IMG/VR virus record: IMGVR_UViG_3300048571_000088
Location: 1-64,000 of that record
Length of the DNA: 64,000 nucleotides
Reading direction: 5' to 3' (one strand)
In this document: positions 2,745 through 62,669 of the stretch, piece after piece
Layout of the letters: each line of letters begins with the position of its first letter
Position numbering within the stretch: position 1 is the first letter of the stretch
Program-made: the position numbers and the translations under genes
The notes under the pieces: model-generated
Database searches by the model: none
What the model saw: the letters and a program-made list of their open reading frames with translations, nothing else
What the model was told of the DNA's origin: nothing

Positions 2745-4278
2745 TAATATTGGGTTAACTAAAGGAAATTAAAAAATGTATTCAGAACTATCAGAACAAT
2801 TCTTATACAACAAAGAAAACTTTAAGAATCACTCATAAAGAATGGATAAAGAAAATAAAAATCACTGAAATAAATACATTATTAAAAATAGAATAATAGC
2901 ACACCTATTCAGAAGAACCGTTTAAGTGTATTACTTTATTTTTAATATCTTTTAAATTAACATAAGTTTTCCTAGAGCTAGACAGTTTAATTAGAGTTTA
3001 TTGATACTTATTAGAATTTTACCTTTAAAACTATGCCCGCTGTTATTTATTATTTAAGTGGATGGATTAGGAAAAGACTTACTAAAAAAATTCCATTTTT
3101 CAAAGTGGTTAATGTTAATTGTTTTTGTATGTTTTTTTACTTGATGTGCCTTATAAACAGGAAAGTGAAACTGTTTTTCATGTTTTGTAAATTTAAAATA
3201 AATATCAGAATCTGGGTCATTTACTTTTAAAATTACATCACCATTTAAGTCAATTTCATAATATGATTCACTAAAAATATCAATCCACATATCTGCTATG
3301 TTTTGTATTATAGGTAAATGGAGTAGATGCTCACTAAAGTTTGGATCTCCGTACTGATCTATAAAGCATGTTGAAGCGATTAATCGCTTCAAAGCGCGCA
3401 ATGGAATACAAGTACCAGGATTAATAAAGTGAGTAAAAGTAAAAAAGTCTAATAAAGTGACAAAAGAAGATAGATCTTTTGTACTCTTATATTCTGTTAA
3501 TGCATTTAACAAGGCCAGTGATTTTGAATTATCTCTTTTTGTGTATGAACCACTTTTAAAATAATTGTCAAGCCAGTCGTCATCAATAATCATACCATCT
3601 AAGTAGACATAAGAAGTACCACCAACATAGTAACACCAATAATTATATTTTTCTATGAAAGGGAGATACTTAGCAGGAGTATTTAACTGAGTTTTTAAAA
3701 TTTGATTTAAACCTGCAGCAGAAGACTGGTCAGCAATATCAATAAAAAATTCATTTAAAATTGTTGTTAACTTATCAAATTGATCATTCATTCTTAAATT
3801 TTTCTTACACTATAGGTAGGTGTGGTTATCTCTTCGATTTCTACGAGGTCCCACCAAGTGCACATCGGTCCTTCTTCATAAGAAAAGTATTCACATGCTG
3901 AAGACAAATAGATAGACGTATTTGGTAAGTTTATTACTACCATATCGAGATAATGATGAGTGCCTTTAATTTTATAATCCAATAAGGTAACCGTAGCAGC
4001 AAAACTGTTGATTACTCTTAAATTACCCTTGTACCCAGCAGGAAAGGAGTAATCAGTAAAATACATATTAAATTTATTTAAAAAATCTTTTCTTACTGTC
4101 AAGTCTTCTTTTAATTGCTCAGCAGTGTATTTATTGTTTTCAAAAACATCAAGATAAAATTCATTGTAAGCTTCTTGTTTCTTTTCTGCACTTAACTTTA
4201 CACAGTGGTCTGATAGTGAACTCAGTTCACTAGTTGTTAAATCTGAAAGATTTATATTTAATAGTTTTTGAATGTCAG

Positions 4279-26441: not shown

Positions 26442-26563
26442 TGGCCGAAAGAGTAGGATTTGAACCTACGTGTGCCGGTTCCCATTATAATATTTGCTGT
26501 TAATATTTTTTACAAAATATATTCATATATTACCGGTGCCTTACCAGACTTGGCTATCTTTCG
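26442..26563 (-). ncRNA. tRNA body (Pro-like) with permuted ACAGCAA module inserted in the anticodon loop (copy F)
   Basis: CGAAAGA/UCUUUCG-G-CCA acceptor; intact D and T arms; the CCGGU/ACCGG stem encloses AUAUUUU-GUAA-AAAAUAU-UAACAGCAA; the loop ends UGGGA. Confidence 0.8.
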
Positions 26564-27838: not shown

Positions 27839-27958
27839 TCAGAACGGCAGGGTTCGAACCTACGTCTCTATCTCCCAAAGATAATGTTTAAGAGTTGCTG
27901 TTTGTATTCTTTACAGAATAACTTAACTAAGCGCTTTAACCGACTAAGCTACGTTCTG
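27839..27958 (-). ncRNA. tRNA-Pro(UGG) body with permuted ACAGCAA module inserted 5' of the anticodon arm (copy G)
   Basis: CAGAACG/CGUUCUG acceptor; D arm; insert containing UAUUCU-GUAA-AGAAUA-CAAACAGCAA; then UAUC-UUUGGGA-GAUA and the T arm. Confidence 0.8.
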
Positions 27959-30723: not shown

Positions 30724-31296
30724 TTATTTAATAGAGTTTGCACTAACAAACATATAAATAATATTCATTTCTAGTTCATCAATCAGATTATGAGCTTGGT
30801 TGATTAGCCTGTATTTAATTACTTCTCTGACTTCCATAAGAACAGAACCTAAAAAATTAAGTCCATTCCATTGGTTTGAATCTAAAATTAAAGGATCATC
30901 TGCGGAAAGACCTACACCCCAAATACAATCTACAGGGGATGCCTCTACAAGAAATAAACCATCAGTATCTGACAGTTTTTTTGTTAAATCTTTGTCAGTA
31001 GTAAATTTAAGATAATTTACTTCGTACATTATTTGATAACTTACTTTAGACCATTCTGTGTCTGAATAATTCTTTACGTTTCTTCCTAGTCTTTTAGCAG
31101 TATAAGGATCTTCTGCCTCGTGAATCAATCTCATACTTTCTGTATCTTTAAAGAATTCAGCTTTACGGTACATAAACATATGTTCTGTAGTATAGAAAGT
31201 TAATCCGTTATAGATAATTCCTTTAGGAATATCATGAAAATTACTAAGAAAATTTGTTAAGAAGTAATAATGAGTATCTGTTTTTAAATTATTCAT
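30724..31296 (-). CDS. NADAR (YbiA-like) family protein
   Basis: FLSNFH, TTEHMFMYRKA, AKRLGR, LVEASPVDCIWGVG and GLNFLGSVLMEVRE. Confidence 0.92.
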   Translation of the reverse strand: MNNLKTDTHYYFLTNFLSNFHDIPKGIIYNGLTFYTTEHMFMYRKAEFFKDTESMRLIHEAEDPYTAKRLGRNVKNYSDTEWSKVSYQIMYEVNYLKFTTDKDLTKKLSDTDGLFLVEASPVDCIWGVGLSADDPLILDSNQWNGLNFLGSVLMEVREVIKYRLINQAHNLIDELEMNIIYMFVSANSIK

Positions 31297-31996
31297 TTTC
31301 TGTTTCTAGAATTAAGTTATTAGTTGCTTGATTAAAATTATAAAGTAGACGATCTAAACCAAAAGCAATCTCCAGTACAAAATGATCAGAAGAAAAATCA
31401 GTTCGTTTTGAAACAGAGCAAACTTCCATCCATTTGTCACCATTGTTTACTTCAATATCTAAAGTATTTAAGGAATAAGAAGGTAATCTATCACTAGTAA
31501 CAATACGAGTTGGTAGTTTTAATAGTTCAAGTACTAGATTACCTAAGTCTTTAATAACATTTTCTTGATATTCATTTTTCGTACTAATTGAATAAATACA
31601 TTGAAATTCAAGTTGAAAAAACTCTTTAAATCGACAATGTTTTGTTGCTTGGTCTTGTTCTTTACGGAAAGACTTTGAAGCTTGAAAAACACACAAAGGT
31701 GGTTTGTGACTTAAAGTTAATAATTGGTTTGCATACGCATAGCTTAAAGCAGTTGTTTCTGGCTTTAAAGATAATGTATCTGAAATTTTAAAATAATCAG
31801 ACTCTGAATACTCAGGGTTAATTTGATCATTACTAATCAAACAACTCCCTTCAATCTCATGAAAACCCCAAGCTTTATTTTGACTACGTAAGATGTTTTT
31901 AACACCTAAAGTAATAAATTGTTTGATAAAGTTTCGAATTAAAATATCTTTTTCATTGTAAGCAACAATGCCATTAGTATTTGTCAAACTAAGCAC
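31289..31996 (-). CDS. Truncated class II aminoacyl-tRNA synthetase catalytic domain (GlyRS-like)
   Basis: LKPETT, motif 2 KSFRKE...RFKEFFQLEFQ, YS..TLDIE, WMEVCSVSKRTD, motif 3 LEIAFGLDRL; the protein ends shortly after motif 3. Confidence 0.8.
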   Translation of the reverse strand: MLSLTNTNGIVAYNEKDILIRNFIKQFITLGVKNILRSQNKAWGFHEIEGSCLISNDQINPEYSESDYFKISDTLSLKPETTALSYAYANQLLTLSHKPPLCVFQASKSFRKEQDQATKHCRFKEFFQLEFQCIYSISTKNEYQENVIKDLGNLVLELLKLPTRIVTSDRLPSYSLNTLDIEVNNGDKWMEVCSVSKRTDFSSDHFVLEIAFGLDRLLYNFNQATNNLILETENE

Positions 31997-32550
31997 GGTA
32001 AGTCCTTTAATTGTTTATCTATTTTACATAGTTCTTGTAATAACAGTGCAACTTTGTTTTGTAAAGTATCAATTTGTTTTTCAGTTGTATTATATTTAGA
32101 AACTAAATATTCACAATACTCTTTTAAAACTTCAACACTGTCTTGATCTCCGTACAAATAACTTTTAATTGTATTTGGGTCGAAATAATGTGCTGTTACT
32201 TCAGATAACACACCTGTTTTGTAATCTATCTCGTAAGTAGGAATACTAATTAACGGTTTATAAAAGTCTGTTAGATCTTTTAAAATCTGAATGTGTGCTT
32301 CTGGTGTGGTGTTGTACTCATCTAGTATGATAATCCTACTAAGTGGATTAGTGTCAGACGAAAGATCAATATCTTTTGTCATTGAAACAGGTACAATACC
32401 TAATTCTTTTAATCGTGTTGAATACAAATTTAAATATTTTTGTAATTCTAGAACAAATTTACTTAAGAGTTTCTGGTCGGTGTATTTTAAATAAATTTTA
32501 TGTTTTTGTTTGTATTTGTACATATAGAATCTCAAATAAAAATAATAAAC

Positions 32551-32776
32551 TAGGTAGGAGCCACGAGTAAACATAAGGGACTAAACCCTATGAACAAATA
32601 ACGTGGATTTGTTAAACTATGAAAATTAAACATTAATAATTTTAAACTTTTTAATGTAAAATTTAAGCTGTAAACTGTTCTTATTTTTGGGTATTTAACA
32701 TACCAGCACATGCGTAAGAAAAGCTTATTTTAAGACTTGCTTGTAGTCTTTTTAGTTTTAATGTTTGCCCTACCTA
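32551..32776 (-). ncRNA. Candidate structured RNA downstream of the coiled-coil gene
   Basis: Terminal pairing UAGGUAGG/CCUACCUA, inner CCACG/CGUGG and AGGG/CCCU stems, and a central ~7-nt periodic AU-rich tract. Confidence 0.55.
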
Positions 32777-32838
32777 ATTTATTGGTTGTTTCTTAGCCGG
32801 TTAAAACTAAGAAACAAAAGATAGTTTGTTTATATCAG

Positions 32839-33459
32839 TCAATAAGTAATTGAAGTTGTAACATTCATTTCACTAAGAATAGTATCAACTTCATGAGTTA
32901 AATAATTAATCTCATCACTGACTTCTTTTAATAAAACAGCAGGAGTTTTATTTTTACTTGAAGTAATAACTGAAGCACCGTACAAAGAAGTAAGACTAGT
33001 CAGAATTAGTTCTTTTTGTTGGGCGTCTGCTACAGTTCTCAGGTTTGCTTCAATCTGCTCGGATGCACGATTAACAATATGTTGAGCAGTAGACATTTGT
33101 TTCTGAAGAATTAAAAGAAACTCGCGGCGCAAATCTAGTGTCTGTTTAATAGCTAAAAGATGAGTGATACTTACTTCTTCATTTCCAAACATAACTTTAG
33201 TTTGAAGATTACTTGTTGCAATTGCTACTTGTAATTTAGAAAGTAAAGCTAGAGAACTGAAAACACTGTCTGTATCTGATTGAAGGCGAGCACGAAGTTC
33301 TTCTTCTGTTTTAAATTCAGATTTAGTCGGTTTGTTATTACTACCTTCAAGTGTTGCAATAAATAAAGGATTAGACACACCTGAAAAAGTTGTACTAAGT
33401 TCTTGTTTAATTTTTTTAATTAGTGATAAAGCACGATGGATTGTAATTGTTGTTGACAT
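32839..33459 (-). CDS. Helical-hairpin coiled-coil protein (DIP1984-like)
   Basis: ITIHRAL..., LQVAIATSNLQTKV, SITHLLA, EVDTILSEMNVTTSI pattern. Confidence 0.5.
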   Translation of the reverse strand: MSTTITIHRALSLIKKIKQELSTTFSGVSNPLFIATLEGSNNKPTKSEFKTEEELRARLQSDTDSVFSSLALLSKLQVAIATSNLQTKVMFGNEEVSITHLLAIKQTLDLRREFLLILQKQMSTAQHIVNRASEQIEANLRTVADAQQKELILTSLTSLYGASVITSSKNKTPAVLLKEVSDEINYLTHEVDTILSEMNVTTSITY

Positions 33460-33476
33460 TTTTAATACCTGACGAG

Positions 33477-33917
33477 TTAAGAATTTTTAAATAATTTTAA
33501 GTGTTTTGTAATTGCATCGATCTTGTCATCTGAGCAAGGACCAATAGCTACTACTGTAGGAGTTTTAATACCGTTAAATACAGTGTGTCCATTATCTACG
33601 ATATAAGAACAAGGTAACTTAGCTTCTAAGGCTTTGTTATAAAGACTGAGTAATTCTTCTTCACTGTTTACAGTAAGACAAACTTTCTTTTGTTCACCTG
33701 TTAGCCAGATATGTAAAGCATCACTTGAATAGCAATCTAACTCTCGAAAAACAGCATAAGAGTCAGGAGATTCGTCTTCACCTTCTGTATAAGAATACAT
33801 TAAATTAGTAATAGCTGTAAGAGATCCGTGAGCAACTTGAGCTGCAACTTTACCAACAGGCATATTAAGGTCAGAACGAATTAAGATTACTTGCTTAGTT
33901 TTCATTTTTATTTTCAT
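33477..33917 (-). CDS. pth2: Peptidyl-tRNA hydrolase, Pth2 type
   Basis: KQVILIRSDLNMPVGKVAAQVAH, QKKVCL, IVDNGHT, TVVAIGP and IDAITKHLKL. Confidence 0.92.
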   Translation of the reverse strand: MKIKMKTKQVILIRSDLNMPVGKVAAQVAHGSLTAITNLMYSYTEGEDESPDSYAVFRELDCYSSDALHIWLTGEQKKVCLTVNSEEELLSLYNKALEAKLPCSYIVDNGHTVFNGIKTPTVVAIGPCSDDKIDAITKHLKLFKNS

Positions 33918-33923
33918 TTTATA

Positions 33924-62594: not shown

Positions 62595-62669
62595 GCACCA
62601 GTTGCAAGAATCGAACTTGCTATCTCTTCACAATTTTCTTGTGAGTGCTCTACCTTGAGCTACCTGATG
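62595..62669 (-). pseudogene. Degenerate tRNA-like gene
   Basis: Good D arm (GCUC-AAGGUA-GAGC) and T arm (GCAAG-UUCGAUU-CUUGC); imperfect acceptor; abnormal anticodon arm UCACAA-GAAAA-UUGUGA. Confidence 0.55.

Follow-up and report, generated by a model that had tools for sequence, protein, structure and literature searches.

A large phage genome encodes, directly after the gene for a small protein predicted to be helical, a folded RNA of 241 nt that contains a stretch repeating every 7 nt, and the pair of gene and RNA recurs in about 30 related and distant phages. The RNA matches no catalogued family, and it probably forms with the protein a particle of a kind not previously described, though binding and function are inferred. 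The locus lies on the minus strand of a 64,000-nt stretch of DNA (positions 1 to 64,000 of IMG/VR record IMGVR_UViG_3300048571_000088), referred to here as the window.

A structured RNA downstream of a small protein gene

A preliminary description of the window, made from the sequence alone, called attention to a structured RNA of about 225 nt with a 7-nt periodic tract. That observation stands: every stem and repeat it listed is present on the minus strand, although the RNA is 241 nt long (32543-32783) rather than about 225. Its closing stem, UAGGUAGG (32769-32776) paired with CCUACCUA (32551-32558), is the core of a longer helix of 17 bp (32767-32783 with 32544-32561) with one bulged U, and a hairpin it noted proves to be the first stem of a pseudoknot. 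The parts of the locus, 5' to 3' on the minus strand, are:

32839..33459 (-): gene for the 206-aa partner protein, called c0 here, modelled as a helical bundle with a small beta-sheet tip and a DIP1984-like fold
32786..32817 (-): hairpin of 11-13 bp between the stop codon of c0 and the RNA
32767..32783 (-): 5' strand of the 17-bp closing helix, P1
32751..32766 (-): A-rich junction following the invariant G-C of P1 (GCAAAC...)
32721..32750 (-): H-type pseudoknot, with S1 AAGACU (32745-32750)/AGUCUU (32732-32737), S2 AAGC (32739-32742)/GCUU (32721-32724) and A-rich linker AAAAUAA (32725-32731)
32679..32720 (-): variable region with a local hairpin (32689-32706)
32637..32678 (-): heptad block 1, six units (ACAGUUU ACAGCUU AAAUUUU ACAUUAA AAAGUUU AAAAUUA), predicted single-stranded
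32610..32636 (-): heptad block 2, about four degenerate units (UUAAUGU UUAAUUU UCAUAGU UUAACA) running into the conserved AAAUCC
32561..32609 (-): conserved 3' hairpin, with AAAUCC, closing stem CCACG (32602-32606)/CGUGG (32561-32565), an internal loop with conserved UGUUU and UUUACU, and a distal stem AUAGGG/CCCUUAU that covaries (its AGGG/CCCU within 32573-32591)
32544..32560 (-): 3' strand of P1, including the conserved bulged U
32527..32543 (-): U-rich tail, UAUUUUUAUUUGAGAUU, a possible 3' end of the RNA
31984..32523 (-): downstream ORF of 179 aa, most likely starting at the AUG at 32523 and not conserved next to the RNA in other phages

The fold is better than chance would give. The minus strand has a minimum free energy of -54.3 kcal/mol, against -37.0 +/- 4.1 for dinucleotide shuffles (z -4.21, 0/200 as good), while the plus strand gives only z -1.74. 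The lag-7 autocorrelation of the window's tract is 0.47 (z 3.3, p 0.004), and the same peak (z 3.0-6.5) appears in all 19 homologues tested.

Homologues were found by RNA pattern, by protein, or by the heptads alone. A first loose DNA pattern returned only chance, GC-rich matches. A tightened pattern found one chance match in viral contigs but 19 true members among 50 matches in metagenome contigs. A search of viral contigs for related loci with the single protein confirmed none. The architecture is kept among these homologues, with massive compensatory change in P1, both pseudoknot stems and the hairpin stems.

P1 forms in 19 of 19 homologues, each with a different sequence, and in the window its two strands pair with an energy of -23.4 kcal/mol (RNAduplex). 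Across 18 aligned sequences, 13 of its 17 pairs carry double changes, amounting to 73 compensatory cells, compared to 22.9 +/- 4.0 in shuffles (0/500) and 13-31 in slid controls. A conserved U-G pair in P1, present in 13 of the 18 sequences, fits RNA on this strand only. In the same alignment GCAA is invariant (columns G16 C17 A18 A19). The pseudoknot is found at the same position in 17 of 19 homologues, with 11 different S1 and 13 different S2 sequences (mean score 23.1 vs 13.6 for shuffles). The closing stem of the 3' hairpin changes compensatorily in members found by other routes: CUACG/CGUAG, CCUGG/CCAGG, CCUUGG/CCAAGG and CUAUG/CAUAG.

Could the region instead be a feature of the DNA, an array of iterons (centromere-, operator- or origin-like) bound by the upstream protein, or simply protein-coding? 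Arrays of 7-bp direct repeats next to the gene of their binding protein do exist, for example the omega repressor sites of pSM19035, and ORFs can be drawn across the region (32550..32711 and 31984..32574). However, long-range compensatory pairing with frequent G-U pairs and the strand asymmetry of folding point to RNA, the ORFs are not conserved, and the heptads of homologues carry stops in all frames. Two outcomes had been named beforehand as fatal to the idea of a structured RNA, and neither was found: structure downstream of homologues is conserved, and the AUG at 32574, which would extend ORF 31984..32574 over the 3' stem, lies in a hairpin position that is not AUG in the other homologues compared. 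Both alternatives are very unlikely.

The hairpin between c0 and the RNA is specific to the window. It is absent in homologues, where P1 starts within about 8-85 nt of the stop codon (roughly 10 nt in the close relatives), and since no U-run follows, it is not a canonical intrinsic terminator. A promoter and terminator scan found no more sites than in shuffles and called no terminator at this hairpin or after P1. A late-promoter-like TATAAAAT before the hairpin is not universal among homologues and is absent in the window.

The RNA could not be assigned to a known family. Rfam 15 gave nothing on the element in the window at gathering scores, and at E <= 10 only four spurious snoRNA/miRNA rows (E 0.27-7.2), none of them a minus-strand match inside the element. 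Nothing was found on the element in phages ME3, phiPsa374, KB57, 19-1-2, RsoM2USA or D-1873 at E <= 0.1, apart from an embedded tRNA. Neither ARAGORN nor Rfam called a tRNA or tmRNA on 32543-32783, and P1 varies in sequence, whereas a tmRNA acceptor stem is conserved. The long terminal inverted repeat suggested a MITE or other repeat element, but BLAST found no second copy of the region and no c0 paralogue in the 242.6-kb genome. The combination of closing helix, pseudoknot and repeats also suggested templating of the retron, DRT or telomerase type, but there is no RVT_1 match in the 242,588-bp genome, which CheckV rates 100% complete. The literature searched contains no description of this RNA.

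The coupling of the RNA to c0

In 22 of 22 loci, c0 lies directly upstream of the RNA on the same strand, while other neighbours differ. Nineteen of these loci came from the RNA pattern alone, two from the protein, and one is the window. All 6 distant homologues of c0 in cultured phages (ME3, phiPsa374, KB57, 19-1-2, RsoM2USA and D-1873) have a heptad tract downstream, and most show the hairpin and P1 as well. Of 119 loci returned by a scan for five AAAGNNN units alone, 7 carry c0 in that exact position. In sum, a homologue lies directly upstream of the RNA in every locus where the upstream DNA is present in the sequence.

The flavour of the heptads follows the clade of the protein: A(C/U/A)AG with the HRAL-type proteins and AAAG with the TRALSEL-type. 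In the AAAG-type homologues, block 2 has 5-6 clear units after a 9-nt spacer that shifts the phase. The window's own tract is the most degenerate in the family, the G at heptad position 7 often being U or A.

The protein belongs to PHROG 1491 (phrog_1491, E 3.7e-27), annotated 'tail fiber protein' in RefSeq phage records, probably wrongly. Its AF2 model (pLDDT 92.3) has the fold of the solved DIP1984 protein 3kdq (VIA Z 11.4, rmsd 4.8, 151 of 152 residues aligned; the next row scores 7.6), Foldseek agrees (prob 1.00, E 0.042), and structural neighbours in the Atlas include DUF6847 clusters. Sequence similarity is marginal: PF20935 is hit by 2 of 17 members, best E 0.006, below the cut-off, and the window protein has no hit. 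A sequence-profile search of the PDB returned only chance coiled-coil rows, and PADLOC returned nothing.

The protein is also modelled to self-associate. A four-copy model scores ipSAE 0.51 (runs 0.49-0.58), against 0.02 for the best control, with partner pLDDT at least 80, runs agreeing in at least 89% of contacts, and a two-fold interface. That mark was reached by 20 of 30 proteins solved as homo-pairs and 1 of 23 solved as single chains, counts that hold only roughly here because a custom alignment and four copies were used.

The pair sits in or near tRNA gene clusters in most loci. In KB57 it is in the middle of a 26-tRNA cluster, and a set of loci termed group B have tRNA(CAU) just upstream. 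In three homologues, ME3 and the loci L138 and L166, the variable region of the RNA itself carries a whole tRNA-like gene.

A proposed phage ribonucleoprotein

I propose that c0, as dimers or higher oligomers, binds the heptad tract with one protomer per heptad, reading the conserved A and G. The locus is a two-part module conserved in many virulent phages, in which the gene for a protein of the DIP1984 fold, self-associating by the model, is followed at once by a structured RNA of 240-400 nt. P1 brings the 5' pseudoknot domain next to the conserved 3' hairpin, and between them lies an unpaired tract of about 70-90 nt built from two blocks of heptads (consensus N-U-N-A-N-A-G; 6 + 6 in the clearest members, 6 + about 4 in the window). 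In this view the scaffold of P1, pseudoknot and hairpin fixes the ends of the tract, and P1 may also serve as the processing or termination stem that releases the RNA from the c0 mRNA and from neighbouring tRNAs. The particle would belong to the phage's island of tRNA and translation genes and most likely acts on translation or tRNA metabolism during infection.

The analysis establishes the RNA structure and its strand, its conservation, the fixed order of gene and RNA, the periodic tract and the fold of the protein. Self-association rests on a model alone, expression, stoichiometry and biological role are inferred, and direct binding is inferred from synteny and by analogy with HutP and TRAP. 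The interpretation offered in the preliminary description, that an oligomer of a DIP1984-like protein binds the tract in a TRAP-like or type III antitoxin-like arrangement, is thus supported in part: a conserved RNA tied to the upstream gene, and the fold it named, are borne out, binding is not shown, and the antitoxin comparison is not supported.

There are reasons for caution. The protein is near-neutral (pI about 5.5-8.7, net charge -3 to +2) and has no recognised RNA-binding domain, and the window's own tract is the most degenerate in the family. A dimer with two-fold symmetry cannot bind direct repeats on one strand symmetrically, unless the two blocks run antiparallel. Synteny alone could reflect co-transcription rather than contact. 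I therefore hold the proposal to be only somewhat more likely than not.

An alternative view is that the RNA stands alone, a stable non-coding RNA of phage tRNA islands in the manner of ROOL, GOLLD or the T4 stable RNAs, whose heptads engage a host component (ribosome, RNase E, Hfq-like protein) or other RNAs, while c0 only shares the transcript or acts separately. The location among tRNA genes, the embedded tRNAs and the lack of an RNA-binding signature in c0 favor this idea. But the order of gene and RNA, their strand and their close spacing are kept across very distant phage lineages in which everything else is reshuffled, which is hard to explain without a functional link, and the heptad flavour tracks the protein clade. 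This alternative is possible but less likely.

It is possible to push the proposal further. About six two-fold-symmetric c0 dimers might each clasp one heptad from block 1 and one from block 2, zipping the blocks into an antiparallel protein-RNA ladder held in register by the scaffold, a previously undescribed class of ribonucleoprotein specific to tRNA islands that acts on the phage's translation apparatus and in some phages carries a covalently embedded, fast-evolving tRNA. The evidence does not rule this out, but it is tentative. A more extreme variant is that the heptads dock the anticodon loops (C32-U33-N-U35-N-A37) of NAN-decoding tRNAs. Heptads UUUACAG, UUUAAAG and UUCAUAG would complement Tyr, ochre-suppressor and His anticodon loops, and two loci, L001 and L127, do encode tRNA(UUA) nearby. 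However, the AAAG-type loci, dominated by UAA heptads, show no such tRNA, so the idea is weakened and retained only as improbable.

Recognition of the RNA bears on annotation. The family of c0 is recorded as 'tail fiber protein', probably wrongly, or 'hypothetical' in 92 phage records, including those of cultured Klebsiella, Salmonella, Escherichia, Cronobacter, Pseudomonas, Acinetobacter, Ralstonia and Clostridium phages, and the gap of roughly 300-400 nt behind it is left blank or in places filled with doubtful small ORFs. Cultured carriers include Klebsiella phage KB57, Salmonella phage PVP-SE1, Acinetobacter phage ME3 and Pseudomonas phage phiPsa374. A conserved RNA tied to this protein corrects the annotation, gives the DIP1984/DUF6847 fold its first functional lead, and adds a small, tractable RNA with a protein partner to the unexplained RNAs of phage tRNA islands.

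Comparison with known systems

DIP1984/DUF6847 proteins, annotated 'septicolysin' on Acinetobacter plasmids, share the predicted fold of c0, which is about 55 residues longer. The literature searched contains nothing on the function of DIP1984, DUF6847, 3kdq or septicolysin.

Type III toxin-antitoxin systems also place a repetitive RNA next to a protein gene in a phage-bacterium context. However, in ToxIN, CptIN and TenpIN the repeats are pseudoknot units of 34-45 nt lying upstream of a gene for a ToxN/AbiQ-like endoribonuclease. Here the unit is 7 nt and unstructured, the RNA follows the gene, and c0, modelled as a helical bundle, has no ToxN/AbiQ-like, Pfam or PADLOC match. The pair moreover sits in the tRNA islands of lytic phages. 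A system of this type is very unlikely and already largely refuted.

ROOL and GOLLD are structured RNAs of phages or prophages, often near tRNA islands, with no known function or protein partner, and tRNAs are sometimes embedded in the GOLLD linker (PMC12286853). The present RNA shares this context, but it matches neither Rfam model, it is 241 nt in the window and up to about 400 nt elsewhere against roughly 580 to more than 800 nt, and while ROOL and GOLLD form RNA-only cages, it has a dedicated neighbouring protein gene and a periodic unpaired tract.

TRAP, the analogy drawn in the preliminary description, is an oligomer that reads tandem (G/U)AG triplets on single-stranded RNA, one per subunit. 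It is an 11-mer beta-sheet ring and its site has 11 repeats with spacers of 2-3 nt. Here the spacer is 4 nt, the fold is different, and there is no TrpBP match in Pfam.

The closest precedent is HutP and the hut terminator RNA of Bacillus subtilis. HutP, a homo-oligomer, reads the A and G of XAG motifs spaced 7 nt apart (U498, U505, U512) in two sites joined by a linker of 12-17 nt (PMC2425495). The RNA described here has the same pattern, heptads ending in AG in two blocks joined in the AAAG-type homologues by about 9 nt. The hutP gene lies just upstream of its RNA site, which is followed by the regulated genes. It might then be that c0 binds its own nascent transcript in cis, changing whether P1 and the U-run terminate transcription before downstream genes or tRNAs. 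By eye, about two-thirds of the homologues compared have a run of 4 or more U within about 12 nt of the 3' strand of P1, and downstream genes lie on the same strand. However, P1 closes a loop of 200-350 nt, a poor geometry for an intrinsic terminator, and none is called. The pseudoknot, the conserved internal loop of the hairpin and the embedded tRNAs are more than an attenuator needs, and downstream genes are not conserved. An attenuator is therefore unlikely.

The differences from hut are considerable. HutP is an alpha/beta hexamer of its own Pfam family, while c0 is predicted to be a helical bundle, with no HutP hit among the 17 members scanned against Pfam at E <= 1. There are 3 + 3 motifs in hut against about 6 + 6 here, and where the hut site is a simple terminator hairpin, this tract is framed by a closing helix of 17-30 bp, a pseudoknot and a conserved hairpin. 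If binding occurs as proposed, an array of 6 + 6 heptads read by a helical-bundle oligomer would be a new structural solution to periodic RNA recognition, beside TRAP and HutP.

A minus-strand RNA in a translation-related gene region

The element lies in a single-contig virus record of 242,588 bp and 33% G+C, rated 100% complete by CheckV. The window is the first 64 kb of this record. The genes around it run on the minus strand, and many have functions related to translation. Between 22.9 and 62.7 kb there are six to ten tRNA or tRNA-like genes, and near the element itself lies a run of translation- and stress-related genes (30724-36093). The features that bear on what follows are these:

26445-26563 and 27839-27958, minus strand: tRNA matches of 119-120 nt (Rfam) that ARAGORN does not call
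30724-31296, minus strand: NADAR
31289-31996, minus strand: 235-aa protein with only a class II aminoacyl-tRNA-synthetase-like catalytic core
32544-32561 with 32767-32783, minus strand: closing stem of the RNA, 17 bp with one bulged U
32839-33459, minus strand: gene of the 206-aa protein, called c0 here
33477-33917, minus strand: PTH2 peptidyl-tRNA hydrolase
33924-35075, minus strand: TelA
35449-36093, minus strand: PP-loop (TilS-like) ATPase
36191-37663, minus strand: 490-aa DUF2828/DUF7788 protein
37735-37843, minus strand: tRNA-like match of 109 nt (38.3 bits)
62595-62668, minus strand: tRNA-Phe called by ARAGORN with the unusual anticodon AAA, not reported by Rfam at gathering

The synthetase-like protein is best matched by GlyRS at E 7e-13, far below the cut-off, with weak matches to HisRS, PylS C-terminal and PheS-related models. 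Its gene is truncated, stands alone and lies two genes downstream of the RNA. Homologues of the PP-loop and PTH2 proteins recur near the element in other loci (protein clusters c1 and c5). The 109-nt tRNA-like match lies directly upstream of the DUF2828/DUF7788 gene, and it is probably the first protein-RNA pair implied by the preliminary description, which called the present one the second. A Ro/Y-RNA-like arrangement is a possibility there.

The RNA lies in the 315-nt gap between the c0 gene and the next ORF. The observation made in the preliminary description holds: read on the minus strand, every stem it listed and its run of heptads are where it placed them, although the closing stem is longer than reported. 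The 238-nt core folds at -54.3 kcal/mol, against -37.0 +/- 4.1 for dinucleotide shuffles (z -4.21), while the complementary strand gives only z -1.74. The heptad tract has a lag-7 autocorrelation of 0.47 (z 3.3, p 0.004). What had been described as an AAGACU/AGUCUU hairpin is stem 1 (S1) of an H-type pseudoknot, whose loop AAGC pairs (S2) with GCUU seven A-rich nucleotides downstream.

Homologues, architecture and covariation

Homologues were found by three independent routes. In the first, a word search of protein sequences gave two relatives of the 206-aa protein. Both have a long non-coding stretch downstream with the same conserved sequence, AAAUCCACGU...UUUACUCGUGGCU, and a closing helix that differs in sequence but stays complementary. 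In the second, a DNA pattern taken from that 3' hairpin returned 50 metagenome loci, of which 19 are true members, on AT-rich contigs up to 226 kb, and the rest are chance, GC-rich matches. In the third, viral contigs were scanned for five AAAGNNN units and nothing else. This returned at least 119 loci, seven of which carry a homologue of the protein directly upstream on the same strand, together with the complete RNA architecture.

In addition, tblastn found the protein in 92 phage records, and six of these were inspected: Acinetobacter phage ME3, Pseudomonas phage phiPsa374, Klebsiella phage KB57, Escherichia phage 19-1-2, Ralstonia phage RsoM2USA and Clostridium phage D-1873. All six have an unannotated gap of 300-1200 nt downstream that contains a heptad tract. 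The AAAUC-hairpin is recognisable by eye in ME3, KB57, 19-1-2, D-1873 and phiPsa374, and the closing helix is confirmed in ME3 and KB57 and seen by eye in phiPsa374. In RsoM2USA a minus-strand ORF (2436-2732 of its locus, L176) is annotated over the heptad tract and is probably spurious. In D-1873 a drum RNA (RF02958, 47.7 bits, above gathering; 2910-3017 of its locus, L177) lies a few hundred nucleotides downstream of that phage's copy of the element, in the same 1.2-kb non-coding stretch.

The homologues share a common plan. From 5' to 3', it begins with the closing helix P1 (14-30 bp), G(C)AAA and an A-rich junction, then an H-type pseudoknot with an A-rich linker ((U/G)GAAAUAA). There follow a variable region and the tract, consisting of heptad block 1, a short spacer and heptad block 2. 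Next comes AAAUC, followed by a hairpin with a conserved internal loop and a variable distal stem, and finally CU and the 3' strand of P1, often followed by a U-run.

P1 forms in 19 of 19 sequences, each with a different sequence. On an alignment of 18 sequences, 13 of 17 pairs carry changes on both sides. There are 73 compensatory cells, against 22.9 +/- 4.0 in shuffles (0/500) and 13-31 when the partner strand is slid by 1-3 columns, and the covariation score is 0.615 against at most 0.156. One pair is U-G in 13 of 18 sequences, which fits RNA on this strand only. The pseudoknot sits at element position 34-36 in 17 of 19 sequences, with 11 different S1 and 13 different S2 pairings. The closing stem of the 3' hairpin is invariant in the set derived from the DNA pattern, but only by construction, since the pattern demanded it. 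In members found by the other routes it changes compensatorily: CUACG/CGUAG, CCUGG/CCAGG, CCUUGG/CCAAGG, CUAUG/CAUAG. This is therefore a genuine structured RNA family. It matches nothing in Rfam 15 at any threshold, either in the window or in the cultured phages.

An alternative view is that the feature acts as DNA, as a set of iterons, or that it is coding sequence, but this is very unlikely. The preliminary description had allowed in advance that its reading would be refuted if ORF 31984..32574 were truly translated from its upstream start across the 3' stem. This objection does not hold. The AUG at 32574 lies in a hairpin position that is not AUG in the other homologues compared, and the downstream ORF most likely starts at 32523.

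When the tracts are right-aligned on AAAUC, the units read N-U-N-A-N-A-G. In one clade of the protein (N-terminus ITVTRALSEL) they are almost all of the (U/C)UAAAG type, arranged as six units, a spacer of roughly 9 nt that shifts the phase by two, and then five or six more units. In the clade that includes the window (ITIHRAL) they are UUACAG, UUAUAG or UUACAU. The window has six units in block 1 and about four degenerate ones in block 2. Lag-7 and lag-14 peaks are present in every member (z 3.0-6.5).

The upstream protein and the tRNA context

The protein c0 has no Pfam or NCBIfam assignment. It matches PHROG 1491, whose label, "tail fiber protein", has spread to RefSeq phage records (e.g., NC_041884.1 161192-161797 and NC_028659.1 65094-65741). 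The place of these homologues in early or tRNA regions and their predicted DIP1984-like helical fold make that label doubtful. The AlphaFold2 model, built on 17 homologues, is confident (pLDDT 92.3) and shows a helical bundle with a small sheet made by the N-terminal strand, a hairpin at residues 88-97 and the C-terminal strand. The invariant residues R9, N84, K105, S196, E197, N199 and T202 lie in or next to these strands in the sequence. The only outstanding structural match is 3kdq, an uncharacterised protein of Corynebacterium diphtheriae (Z 11.4, 151 of 152 residues, the next row at 7.6), which confirms the earlier suggestion that the protein is DIP1984-like. Two of 17 members touch PF20935 (DUF6847) weakly. 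In the literature searched, no paper gives a function for this family, which appears only as an annotation ("septicolysin", "DIP1984 family") on Acinetobacter plasmids.

The proteins are near-neutral. A four-copy model supports self-association through a two-fold interface, with ipSAE 0.51 (runs 0.49-0.58) against a best control of 0.02, partner pLDDT of at least 80, and runs that agree in at least 89% of contacts. The mark was reached by 20 of 30 proteins solved as homo-pairs and by 1 of 23 solved as single chains, but these counts hold only roughly here, because a custom alignment and four copies were used.

In 22 of 22 loci with the RNA, c0 is the gene immediately upstream on the same strand, while the remaining neighbours vary. 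In the close homologues P1 starts about 10 nt after the c0 stop codon, and in KB57 roughly 60 nt after it. The window inserts an extra hairpin of 11-13 bp there.

The pair is embedded in or near tRNA clusters. KB57 has 26 tRNA matches between 60.8 and 67.6 kb, with the pair in the middle. Several loci with AAAG-type heptads have tRNA(CAU) just upstream of c0, and four of the homologous loci (L002, L127, L135 and L137) have tRNAs on both sides. In loci L001 (484-564) and L127 (2649-2732), ARAGORN calls tRNAs with anticodon UUA (ochre-suppressor type), and in L127 this tRNA lies between the protein gene and the RNA element. The genes inspected still end in TAA, so no recoding is claimed.

A tRNA-like gene is carried inside the variable region in ME3 and in loci L138 and L166. 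The elements at L138 2393-2698 and L166 9210-9516 are nearly identical, yet the anticodon arms of their embedded tRNAs are completely different (Gly UCC and Lys UUU, respectively, by ARAGORN), while the rest of the tRNA and of the RNA is the same. The embedded tRNA of ME3 has an abnormal anticodon loop and is annotated tRNA-OTHER.

The tRNA matches of 119-120 nt in the window, and those of the same length in L002 (about 1270-1390) and L135 (just upstream of the element), which ARAGORN likewise does not call, carry an extra arm of about 45 nt. The arm is a hairpin whose loop reads (C/U)UGUAAA, a Tyr-type anticodon loop, followed by ACAAACAGCAA(A/C). The motif (A/G)GCAAA(C/U)AUUA just after a stem is shared with the 5' junction of the RNA element (GGGCAAACAUUAA), and the heptad UUUACAG is the exact complement of the loop CUGUAAA.

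A possible ribonucleoprotein and its nearest precedents

What the analysis establishes is a conserved RNA fold, a periodic unpaired tract and an obligatory upstream partner gene, whose product is modelled to oligomerise. Contact between the two is inferred. I propose, as somewhat more likely than not, that c0 oligomers bind the heptads and form an RNP, in which the P1/pseudoknot/hairpin scaffold would frame the tract. The interpretation offered in the preliminary description, that an oligomer of the DIP1984-like protein binds the tract as in TRAP-like or type III antitoxin-like arrangements, is partly supported. It is possible, though less likely, that the RNA stands alone and engages host factors.

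The closest mechanistic precedent is HutP, a hexamer that reads XAG motifs spaced 7 nt apart in two clusters joined by a linker of 12-17 nt (PMC2425495). The hutP gene sits directly upstream of the RNA site. TRAP is the other classic case. A HutP-like attenuator for downstream genes is a more doubtful alternative, and an arrangement like that of type III toxin-antitoxin systems is very unlikely. Membership in the HutP, TRAP or type III toxin-antitoxin families fails on the protein criteria, and for type III it fails also on repeat length, repeat structure and gene order.

The closest family by biology is the set of phage tRNA-island RNAs of unknown function, ROOL and GOLLD (PMC12286853). The present RNA does not share their size, any Rfam match, or their lack of a protein partner. 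What it does share with them is the genomic context and, in some members, the embedded tRNA.
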